Source: Bugula neritina
Taxonomy: Eukaryota > Animalia > Bryozoa
Length of the DNA stretch: 64,000 nt
Assembly: GCA_964035545.1 (NCBI GenBank)
Contig: OZ037770.1
Location: forward strand, 5,900,729 to 5,964,728
Direction: 5' to 3'
A program made the position numbers and the translations under genes. Shown in pieces: positions 1 through 45,172 of this stretch; position 1 is the stretch's first letter, and every line of letters starts with the position of its first letter. The notes below the pieces were generated by a model that was not told where the DNA came from, did not search any database, and was given only the letters and a program-made list of their open reading frames with translations.

Positions 1-847
1 GATTGATTATTTCAAAATAACATGGATTCCTAGAATGTTTAATGAACACCGACGAGAGGCATCATTGACTGTACATTAACACCCCAGCAGCTAGTAGCAA
101 GAAGTATTTTTCAGTAATTTAAAAGTATTTTTGAGATTTAAATTTACAATTGATCATATAAAGAAATGGTTTGACAAAAAGCTGTCTCCCAAGAGCATTA
201 TTTGAAACATTAAGCAACCAAGTTCTGCCACAATTTGGAGACGCTTTGCAACAAGTGATATTGTCTGACTAACGCTGCCAACACATGATAAATGCTACTA
301 AATACTGTAAAAATTGAAGCAAATGATGCTTTCATTAGCAAAAGACCTGTTTTATGAACAATGGCTTTGCCAACAAGACGGTGAGCTTTGCAACACAGCT
401 AAGGAGGAAAGGAAAGAATGGAAAACAATGACATTAACTCTCAGATCTCAATCCTAGTGCTGAGTTCTTGTGTAGCATTAGTTACCACATTGCTACCAAG
501 CAATAGTAAGATGTTTGAGCTGATGCTACAGTTCAGGTATTGAGAAGCCTCCATAGAGTGACGTTCTCTAATACATTATATTATACATATAGTCTATATA
601 GACATATAACACAGTGTAGGTAACGGAATATCATGATATATTACTAACCATCATCAGGTACTAGAGAAGTGTACGTTCCTTGTGTGGTTCCACCTGGGGT
701 CATGTCAACTACAAGTATGTCATATAAGAGCCTAGATTGCTACATTTTTGGACAACCGCTTAATGAAATGCATTTCGTAATTTTTTCTATTAATCTCCTA
801 TTTCCCTGAATAAATGACTAGCATGATGGACGAACATATACCATGAA

Positions 848-993
848 TATATATATATATATATATATATATATATATATATATATATATATATATATAT
901 ATATATGTATATATATATATATATATATATATATATATATATATATATATATATATATATATGTATATATATATATACATATATATATATATA
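848..993. repeat. (TA)n microsatellite
   Basis: Direct; explains the YIYI ORF 798-1112. Confidence 0.97.
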
Positions 994-43200: not shown

Positions 43201-45172
43201 ATAGTGAGGCTACTAAAGATGTCTCGATCTTTTTAGTCTAGATTGAAAAAAACAGCTTGTACAACTTGTACCATGCAATTTCTTTCCAATAAATAGGAAG
43301 AGTACTTCAGAAATGTTCATGTTGAACAATGCCATTGTTGCAAGCATTAAGACCCAGTGTAGCGTATATATACTACATTTTATAAAACCAAAACAAACAA
43401 ACAAATAAAACAAAATACAACTTGATTTCAGTTTATAAGGTTCCTAGTGAAAGGTTCAACCCAAAAAGTTTTGGCTAATGTCTTTTTTGGCAAGGAATAA
43501 ACTTAACAACCTAGTAAACCCTTTTATGTTGTATTGTTAAAAAAATTTGTAGAAAAAATAGACTTTTATAAAACTTTTTTATCAATAGTGTATAAAGGCG
43601 GCTATAGTTGTAGACAAATATTTATACTTGACTTGAGCTTGAGAACTGTTTTGCGAAAAAATATCTTCTGATAATATTAATTGAAGGAACTAAAGCTCTT
43701 TGGTAGACAGGAAAATGCTTCCCTGTCTCTATAATACTTTAGAGTTTTATCTTCAACTAACAGGCATCTAAGTGTGTTGTTGAGTTGGAAAATCAAGCAG
43801 TATTTTCAATAAAATTTTCTATAAAAATAATCTTTTAATAAATTATGTTCAAAAGTGTTACTATTTTTAAACATTATTATCAAAAGTTTAGATGCATTGA
43901 AAAATTTTGTTTACATACAATAAATATAAACTGTGTTTCAACTCGAGGATGATATACATATATATATATATATATATATATACATATATATATATATATA
44001 TATATATATATATATATATATATATATATATATATATATATATATATATATATATATATATATATATATATATATATATATATATATATATATATAATGT
44101 AGTGTGTTCAGATTGTTAATGATACATATATATTTTTTTATTTAAAAAATCTCACACGACTATATAGTTTCGTACAGTAATATATATATATATATATATA
44201 TATATATATATAGATATATATATATATATATATATGTTAGTGTGCGTGAGTGTGCGTGAGTGTGCGTGAGTGTGCGTGTGTGTGCGTGTGTCTACGAATC
44301 AAACACATCACCATGTTGCTGGAAAAAATACTTTACTTTCATACCAGAGTTAATGCAAGAAAACCTCACTCTCAGTTGCTTAGCTTTAGGAAATCCTGTC
44401 TCACACTGTTCCTTAGGTAATGTAATATTTATTCCTTGAGGTCCTAGGGAACAGTTCTGTTTAGCATAACAGTTGGCTCTGATTCTGTCTTCATTCTGAC
44501 AGACACTGTGTTGTCCATCCAGATAAAAATTAAAGTTTCCAACCACTGGACAGACCAGTTGAGTACAATACACAGAGTCTGAGTAATAATATTCTAGTGT
44601 TAGGATTTCTATCACTGAATCTTGTGGACAGGATATGTTTGCAGAGCGTGAGAGTTCTCCAGAGTGCTCATCAAATATAAAGGTTTTTGTTTGAGGAGCT
44701 ACAAAATTAAAAGCACAGAAGCTTAAAATTATTTTTATTATGCAATCAAAGTTTTACAAAATTATTCGCCTGCAGATTGCCAAAGTTTTTTAGAGCGTTT
44801 TCAAAACATTTTAGGTATATAGCTGCATGGAGAGCTGCAATACTAAAAATTATATTATGTGTAATATTTTCCATTTTATATGTGATTTTGAATTTCTTTT
44901 CCAGAATATTGGTCAGGTTAAAATATACACTTCTGCGGTTTGTTAGATATAAAAAGCTAATGTACCTGCGTGATATCTTCATCTCCATGATGTTTTAGAG
45001 CAGCTATAATTTTGAGCGTAATAGTTTGTGAACAATAACATTCACATTTTTTAAATCAAAAACATGTGTTTTTGTTAAGCAGGAAGAACTTACCAGACAC
45101 TGCAAGTGCAGTCAGTAGCACAAAGTTGAGAGTAATAGAGGCAGGTAAAGATGATTCAGAAACTCCCAACAT
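19224..45172 (-). CDS. Receptor paralogue B: SP + SUEL-lectin-like + CUB-like + Thr stalk + TM + Tyr-motif tail (open frame)
   Basis: Exons 45172-45094 (signal peptide), 44698-44345, 41778-41401, 41257-41174, 40853-40770 ([16 protein letters not shown]), 20715-20595 (TM: [26 protein letters not shown]), 20186-20098 ([12 protein letters not shown]), 19832-19773 ([20 protein letters not shown]), 19283-19224 ([20 protein letters not shown]). All are GT-AG with consistent phases and sizes that mirror paralogue A. Confidence 0.82.
24052..24135. repeat. (TA)n microsatellite
   Basis: Direct. Confidence 0.97.
24563..24644 (-). mobile_element. tRNA-derived SINE head / tRNA-like Pol III remnant
   Basis: A-box TGGCTTCGTGG, B-box GGTTCAATCC, then T6; no acceptor stem. 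Confidence 0.55.
26642..26795. mobile_element. Small MITE
   Basis: Inverted ends caccgcgtttccat / atggaaacgcagtg; internal ttcgcataatgcga repeats. Confidence 0.55.
27792..28268. mobile_element. Fold-back MITE with ~150-bp inverted arms
   Basis: caatattctgaatgcccattgctccgaaggtccattagtccgaaaattagtacacacaggcatcctca... is mirrored at 28115-28268. Confidence 0.85.
33480..35200. repeat. Degenerate tri/hexanucleotide low-complexity tract (act/agt/aatact/atcact) surrounding a CpG-richer island at ~33760-34030
   Basis: Direct composition; a similar tract lies at 59120-59520. Confidence 0.6.
36570..37090 (-). mobile_element. RTE-clade LINE 3' fragment
   Basis: [55 protein letters not shown] resembles the post-RT region of RTE/BovB-like ORFs; degenerate. 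Confidence 0.75.
38955..39475. repeat. Compound (GTA/GCA/GAA)n trinucleotide repeat
   Basis: Direct; explains the poly-V/A, poly-L and poly-Y/C ORFs. Confidence 0.97.
43950..44291. repeat. (TA)n tracts plus (GTGTGCGTGA)n
   Basis: Direct. Confidence 0.95.

Follow-up and report, generated by a model that had tools for sequence, protein, structure and literature searches.

The question raised by this locus is what kind of protein is encoded by a pair of similar genes in a 64,000-nucleotide stretch of DNA from the bryozoan Bugula neritina (contig OZ037770.1, also called C6, positions 5900729-5964728; hereafter, the window), and whether the pair represents a candidate immune or allorecognition locus, as had been proposed in a first-pass annotation of the same sequence. 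The genome is of 216 Mb, AT-rich and with about 32% GC. Here, the region is read, with some preference, as a tandem duplicate of a bryozoan-restricted gene for a type I membrane glycoprotein, probably a surface receptor for contact or recognition. The observed part of this reading is made up of the structure of the genes, the folds of the domains, the size and taxonomic range of the family, and purifying selection. The two copies, both on the minus strand, are referred to as gene A (6153..644) and gene B (45172..19219), and their paralogs elsewhere on the contig as C, D and E.

Gene B is intact: its nine exons amount to 1314 nt, every intron is GT-AG and the phases agree. The edges of the exons coincide with the points at which conservation to paralogs C, D and E sharply starts or stops, at splice sites, and are thereby fixed. 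Exons for signal peptides, which had to combine an ATG with a hydrophobic core and to end in a phase-1 GT donor, are clear in B, C, D and E. From 5' to 3', exon 1 of gene B (45094..45172) carries the ATG and the signal peptide, ends in the phase-1 donor GTAAGT and is 92% identical to exon 1 of A; exon 2 (44345..44698), of symmetric phase 1-1, encodes the first ectodomain (D1), an eight-cysteine SUEL-lectin-like fold with a match to the Pfam family SUEL_Lectin below its cut-off (E=0.015); exon 3 (41401..41778), with an intact length of 378 nt, encodes the second ectodomain (D2), CUB-like by fold only; and exon 4 (41174..41257) corresponds to a short cysteine-containing linker. Exon 5 (40770..40853) encodes a Thr/Ser-rich stalk, for which only the inner acceptor is usable, since stops close the longer form used in A. 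Exon 6 (20595..20715), reached over an intron of ~20 kb, specifies the transmembrane (TM) helix followed by RR. The cytoplasmic part is distributed over exon 7 (20098..20186), with a conserved GDYDVI...VY motif and 82% identity to A versus 68-70% in the flanks, exon 8 (19773..19832), a cytoplasmic cassette, and exon 9 (19219..19283), a duplicate of this cassette that ends in a TAG stop. That these exons are found beyond chance is indicated by the GT-AG junctions, the consistent phases, the paralog-conserved edges, ratios of nonsynonymous to synonymous substitution rates (dN/dS) <1, and proteins from Watersipora and Bugula with the same junction between exons 2 and 3.

Several other candidate exons were considered and rejected. 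The conserved-looking open reading frames (ORFs) immediately upstream of exon 2 (MENITH...) have a stop in A and no phase-compatible donor, and a mini-exon of 20 nt, at about 2846-2865, has no conserved counterpart in the paralogs. Between 38.9 and 39.6 kb, long ORFs of poly-Leu, poly-Tyr and poly-Thr are readings of a microsatellite, (GTA)157, which lies at 38992-39462 inside intron 5 of B; its poly-Leu, poly-Tyr/Cys and poly-Val/Ala ORFs of 188-224 amino acids could pass for a stalk or a TM segment.

Gene A presents all nine exons in the layout of B. These are the signal-peptide exon 1 (6075..6153), exon 2 with an open SUEL-like D1 (4830..5177), exon 3 with D2 (3094..3478), the cysteine-containing linker of exon 4 (2897..2980), the Thr-rich stalk of exon 5 (2305..2424, with an alternative inner acceptor at 2388), the TM helix of exon 6 (2096..2213), exon 7 with the cytoplasmic GDYDVI motif (1313..1401), and two copies of the cassette, exon 8 (1058..1117) and exon 9 (644..708, ending in a TAG stop). 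Exon 3 contains 7 extra nucleotides (about 3268..3262) which are absent from B, C, D and E and cause a frameshift with premature stops; at exon 8, the donor reads AG in place of GT, and read-through past it enters an (AT)74 microsatellite. Because of the frameshift and the lost donor, gene A is probably a pseudogene, and a young one. A Logan contig of sequencing run X1 covers 1334-3347 with zero mismatches and spans the insertion, although X1 may be the source sample of the window rather than an independent one. The two colinear nine-exon minus-strand genes of the first-pass annotation are thus recovered completely for B, at the stated place (its ATG, at 45172, is the end coordinate given there), and for A in layout only. 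The order of signal peptide, Cys domain, second Cys domain, Thr stalk, TM helix and kinase-less tail with several tyrosines can be read in both models. Within intron 1 of gene A, the segment 5443-5600 is of very high copy number, with a contig depth ~100x the local level in X1 and ~1000x in X2, and is probably a dispersed repeat.

As regards the ectodomain, D1 is, judging from its cysteines and from a structural model, a divergent SUEL/rhamnose-lectin fold that keeps the four-disulfide scaffold and in which the sugar-site motifs are replaced. Eight cysteines (C22, C43, C48, C65, C75, C81, C97 and C113) are invariant or at least 90% conserved among 18 family sequences and align Cys-for-Cys with the lectin domain of latrophilin-3. 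The SUEL cysteine spacing previously claimed therefore holds for the canonical order of the eight residues, but none of the 18 members reaches the Pfam gathering cut-off for SUEL_Lectin (PF02140), with 16-26 bits versus the required 31.4. SUEL_Lectin is nevertheless the sole recurrent Pfam match (8 of 18 members at E<=1, best E 7.8e-6, about 26 bits), and the matches with a stated extent all cover positions 1-80 of the 80 in the profile, including that of B (16.1 bits, E 0.015). D1 itself is longer, with about 94 residues. Window exons were searched one by one; raw ORF pieces gave no match in Pfam, being clipped, and properly bounded exons were required. Among PDB sequences, the D1 profile matched only latrophilin-3 lectin domains (E 0.23-4.5, full-length). 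The motifs of the sugar site are replaced in both A and B (YGR by YYS/YYY, DPC by EQC and KYL by KANQL/KAKQL) and are variable across the family; the EYYS/EYYY, EQC and KANQL/KAKQL replacements that had been noted earlier are directly legible in the translations.

The fold was modelled with AlphaFold2 on ectodomain residues 25-290 of a Watersipora homologue, as a proxy for the window protein, with the window exons as separate rows of the alignment. In this model, D1 has a predicted local distance difference test score (pLDDT) of 85-95. Its top Foldseek matches are SUL-I, CSL3 and the lectin domain of latrophilin/LAT-1 (E 2e-4, probability 0.97-1.0), and VIA gives Z 7.0-7.5 with a root-mean-square deviation (rmsd) of about 3 A over 80-88 residues, so that the SUEL-like assignment of D1 in the first-pass annotation is borne out by both methods on the Watersipora model. 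A shape search of the ESM Atlas places D1 next to EVA1C, CSL2-like and LAT-1 clusters.

The D2 exon encodes three cysteines, to which the short exon 4 adds one. D2 is tentatively CUB-like by fold. Of the VIA matches that fall solely within model residues 114-238, nearly all are CUB domains (Z 6.0-7.3, about 105 residues, rmsd 2.6-3.2 A, with a model pLDDT of 40-76), from MASP, C1r/s, spermadhesin, NETO2, neuropilin, PCPE and cubilin, and the N-terminal 'C...SP.Y......C.C' pattern of D2 resembles the start of a CUB domain. A feature search of the ESM Atlas with D2 yielded nothing but bacterial DUF4249, at low recognition, and was judged uninformative.

The cytoplasmic tail comprises ~70 residues, with four to five tyrosines and no kinase. 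The TM helices of A and B (one of them being LLASIVSAFIVLLIGMVVAVSLLL) contain no charged residue. None of the tyrosines in the A and B tails (GDYDVI, GTYTSL, RVYTSL, GTYTSF) fits the consensus of an immunoreceptor tyrosine-based inhibitory motif (ITIM, [SIVL]xYxx[IVL]), of a switch motif (ITSM) or of an activation motif (ITAM). All conserved tail tyrosines of A and B are found in a Yxx[ILF], or YxxPhi, context (YDVI, YTSL, YTSF), which may serve clathrin-adaptor sorting as well as SH2 docking; the tyrosine tail for SH2 docking proposed at first is accordingly retained as to its several tyrosines and missing kinase, and its purpose becomes compatible with sorting too. Identity between A and B is 82-86% in the tail exons and 58-70% in their flanks, which points to constraint on the tail exons. 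Exon 7 is longer in paralogs D and E than in A and B, where the counterpart of the first half of this longer exon falls upstream of the acceptor, in another frame. In D, exon 7 reads VEYHELEQPETYDVI, which is ITAM-like but with 5 spacer residues versus the usual 6-8.

Regarding the extent of the family, a search of the genome with the D1 profile found exactly five loci, A to E, of which C, D and E lie at 4.95, 4.46 and 5.46 Mb of the same contig, respectively. A D2 search gave 10 matches, which correspond to the five loci plus stop-containing fragments, including those at 4.61, 4.77 and 4.84 Mb. The entire family is therefore located within 1.5 Mb, between 4.45 and 5.95 Mb, where the receptor genes are embedded in an array of segmental duplicates (73-90% identity) that also repeat neighbouring genes, including the region of a Brix-domain gene. 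The tandem clustering proposed for the locus is thus present, in a family that is small. Pairwise dN/dS values range from 0.29 to 0.58 for D1 and from 0.40 to 0.77 for D2, with none >1, which indicates purifying but fairly relaxed selection at the level of the compared sequences. Between A and B, the D1 exon is 82% identical and the adjacent non-coding DNA 84-87%, so D1 is not the better conserved of the two; this divergence may reflect the decay of A, exchange with other paralogs or diversifying pressure, among which five sequences cannot separate. Overall, the family appears to evolve by local segmental duplication with frequent gene death.

The taxonomic range is narrow. An exhaustive hidden Markov model search of 1.84 billion representative proteins gave 14 matches only, namely Bugula, two tandem Watersipora genes and a few short environmental contigs, the last of which match only the five loci A-E, at 31-36%. 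The nearest database proteins are bryozoan: KAF6018682.1 from Bugula neritina, which joins exons 2 and 3 exactly as in the model, and XP_067950525.1 and XP_067950524.1 from Watersipora subatra, which present the same order of signal peptide, D1, D2, stalk, TM helix and Tyr tail. The Watersipora pair lies in tandem on the same strand, ~29 kb apart, beside a RhoGAP gene (OY755168.1, 37.48-37.55 Mb), each gene spanning 15-20 kb, and a word-index protein search with the full-length Watersipora protein matched only its tandem neighbour. The B. neritina draft locus that encodes KAF6018682.1 is colinear with locus C, without about 730 nt (14583-14615; end of exon 3 through exon 5), and the annotated 223-residue protein is hence a truncated copy. 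The draft contig, VXIV02003284.1, has 78-90% identity to any segment of the genome of the window, flanking genes (85-90%) included; its use as an allele for a diversity test was rejected, as it is divergent even in these flanking genes and belongs to a related bugulid lineage rather than to the same one. About 4020-4415 of the B. neritina draft segment 12400-18400 is a dispersed repeat present on many contigs. Full-text literature searches found no description of such a family, nor of any bryozoan allorecognition gene.

Three sequencing runs matched the locus. Run X1 contains 96% of the words of the stretch and is probably the source of the assembly; runs X2 and X3, from the same study, are 90-95% alike to the window over exons and some introns, and their contigs are, on these grounds, attributed to the DNA of paralogs or of another lineage. 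Two joints in the run contigs, 3480->4826 and 679->1206 (the latter in X2 and X3), were considered as splice junctions and rejected, since the letters between them are not known. The 679->1206 joint points to a paralog or allele that has the terminal tail cassette only once, in which case the duplication of exons 8 and 9 would be variable.

Taken from the outside inwards, the predicted protein would consist of a signal peptide, the SUEL-fold D1, a probable CUB-like beta-sandwich, a Cys linker, an O-glycosylatable Thr/Ser stalk, the TM helix and the Tyr tail. In such a molecule, D1 could be a module that binds protein or an altered glycan, as do the SUEL domains of latrophilin and EVA-1, and the whole would act as a cell-surface contact or recognition receptor, with the tail tyrosines used for phosphotyrosine signalling, for adaptor-mediated endocytosis or for both. 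Several points weigh against this interpretation. Its function is inferred in its entirety. The evidence for the fold comes from the Watersipora homologue (37% identity in D1, about 23% in D2) and not from the spliced protein of the window; D1 of B alone, run in AlphaFold2 with an alignment of five paralogs, reached a pLDDT of 42 and was discarded. For D2, there is no match to the Pfam CUB family (PF00431) in seven D2 sequences at E<=10, nor any PDB sequence match with the D2 profile, and at a model pLDDT of 40-76, Z values <8 can reflect a common beta-sandwich arrangement. None of the three matching runs is an RNA run, all of them looking like DNA contigs, and both rejected joints could stem from paralogs or alleles with different introns. 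The model of B also requires, between its stalk and TM exons, an intron 5 of ~20 kb (40769..20716), and these two exons are effectively unrelated to those of A (67% identity in the stalk, 59% in the TM exon). On account of this intron and of these non-homologous exons, the 5' and 3' halves of B may not belong to one transcript.

Carried further, this last point leads to the view that both window copies are dead or dying, with exons 1-5 and 6-9 of B no longer forming one transcript and only C, D and E functional. Such decay would account for an intron 5 of about 90 nt in A versus about 20 kb in B, for the loss through stops of the longer upstream form of exon 5 of B and for the unrelated stalk and TM exons, in a pair of which A is already frameshifted. 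It is nonetheless considered improbable, since the nine exons of B all have open reading frames, the right phases and canonical splice sites, the tail exons are better conserved than their flanks, and the Watersipora homologues likewise span 15-20 kb. Another reading is that of an endocytic, cargo or scavenger receptor, the ectodomain of which captures a soluble or particulate ligand and in which the YxxPhi motifs (YDVI, YTSL, YTSF) are AP-2 sorting signals. Each conserved tail tyrosine of A and B stands in the appropriate context, the tail is short with no recognisable signalling motif read in it, and the combination of CUB and lectin modules is common in endocytic receptors such as cubilin, itself among the fold matches. 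Motifs as short as YxxPhi, however, often arise by chance, and the conservation of their flanks (TTQGTYTS) hints at a partner of greater specificity; this explanation is regarded as doubtful, if credible.

The immune or allorecognition locus of the first-pass annotation would consist of polymorphic receptors for self/non-self or pathogens, paired in tandem and signalling through phosphotyrosine and SH2 domains, in analogy to Hydractinia Alr. Extreme allelic polymorphism that predicts fusion or rejection is the defining property of allorecognition loci (Alr, FuHC-type). In paired immune receptors, one partner carries an ITIM and the other recruits an ITAM adaptor through a charged TM residue. 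The layout of A and B departs from such an activating/inhibitory pair, as both have the same type of tail and uncharged TM helices, their tyrosines fit no ITIM, ITSM or ITAM, and one gene of the two is broken by a frameshift. The ITAM-like tail of paralog D (YHELEQPETYDVI) would favour an immune role, but its spacing is one residue short of the usual range. Signs of birth and death in this lineage-restricted cluster (the frameshifted A, the stop-containing D2 fragments and the truncated draft copy) point in the same direction, as do a D1 exon that, between A and B, is conserved no more than its non-coding neighbours, and a D2 dN/dS of up to 0.77; against this, dN/dS stays below 1 in every pair, the D1 copies number only five, and some of the divergence between A and B is explained by relaxed constraint on the pseudogene A alone. 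The host also counts in favour, since allorecognition is expected of bryozoans, which are colonial (PMC7576161). An immune or allorecognition function is held to be rather improbable. The frequent gene death, the poorly conserved D1 exon and the ITAM-like tails in some members also give rise to a bolder version, in which the family would be part of a bryozoan histocompatibility or kin-recognition system, the first on a lectin/CUB scaffold rather than on the immunoglobulin superfamily (IgSF); this is speculative and the least probable proposal considered here. If population data showed hyper-polymorphism, the locus would be a candidate for bryozoan allorecognition.

The duplication that produced the two copies is colinear, with 638-9180, around A, matching 19213-48820, around B, as shown by blastn and by comparing the two halves in translation; with respect to the A copy, B contains an extra ~20 kb between 20237 and 41162. 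The unit extends beyond the genes, as seen from the flank upstream of B (44974..48820), which was duplicated together with the gene and is 84-86% identical to 5950-9180 upstream of A. Upstream of gene A, at 7660-8843, there is an (AGTGT)n pentanucleotide array of ~240 copies that yields a spurious 'TTLHY' ORF of 339 amino acids; the equivalent position upstream of B (about 48350-48421) is nearly free of the repeat. The two genes are separated by a degraded long terminal repeat (LTR) retrotransposon of the Ty3/gypsy type (12300..18400, minus strand), which belongs to neither. It retains reverse transcriptase, RNase H and integrase zinc domains (RVT_1, RT_RNaseH and Integrase_H2C2) over several broken ORFs, in a GC-rich island (43-47%). 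Elsewhere in the window, minisatellites with periods of 17-42 occur within 50700-55920 (for instance at 51724-52041, 55181-55527 and 55649-55917). On the minus strand at 54100-57160, ORF pieces with lid motifs of RFC/Rad17-type AAA+ proteins (AAA_assoc_2 and AAA_lid_RFC1, both below cut-off) are probably exons of a clamp-loader or RAD17-like gene.

We know of almost no functional receptor biology in Bryozoa. For annotation, the analysis supplies a model of B with nine exons and a warning that A is frameshifted, and it adds an undescribed domain architecture, composed of a SUEL fold devoid of its sugar site, a CUB-like domain, a mucin stalk, a TM helix and a Tyr-motif tail. Among known systems, the SUEL/rhamnose-binding lectins (SUL-I 5h4s, CSL3 2zx0, latrophilin 2jx9/5afb, LAT-1 8suf) share with D1 the order of cysteines and the alpha/beta fold, from which D1 differs by its sub-threshold match, its greater length and the replacement of YGR, DPC and KYL. 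EVA-1/EVA1C are also single-pass membrane proteins with an N-terminal SUEL fold and are among the nearest neighbours in the ESM Atlas. EVA1C, however, has two SUEL domains and a FAM176-type C-terminus, whereas the bryozoan genes have one SUEL-like exon, a CUB-like domain, a mucin-like stalk and an unrelated Tyr tail; no significant sequence similarity to EVA1C was found, the only FAM176 match (E 0.1) being on the TM region of the Watersipora homologue. As for CUB receptors (neuropilin, NETO, Kremen, DCBLD2 and cubilin) and the proteases MASP, C1r and C1s, the modelled D2 superposes on their domains and has a CUB-like Cys start, but it lacks a CUB sequence match and its model is of low confidence. 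Finally, Hydractinia Alr1 and Alr2 resemble the products of the bryozoan genes in being type I membrane proteins with short Tyr-bearing tails; in both cases the animal is colonial and the genes are clustered with paralogs and pseudogenes. Alr proteins are nevertheless members of the IgSF, hyper-polymorphic and genetically linked to fusion and rejection, whereas the bryozoan family is small, under purifying selection and known here from reference sequence; on present evidence, it is an ordinary lineage-specific family of contact receptors, undescribed before.

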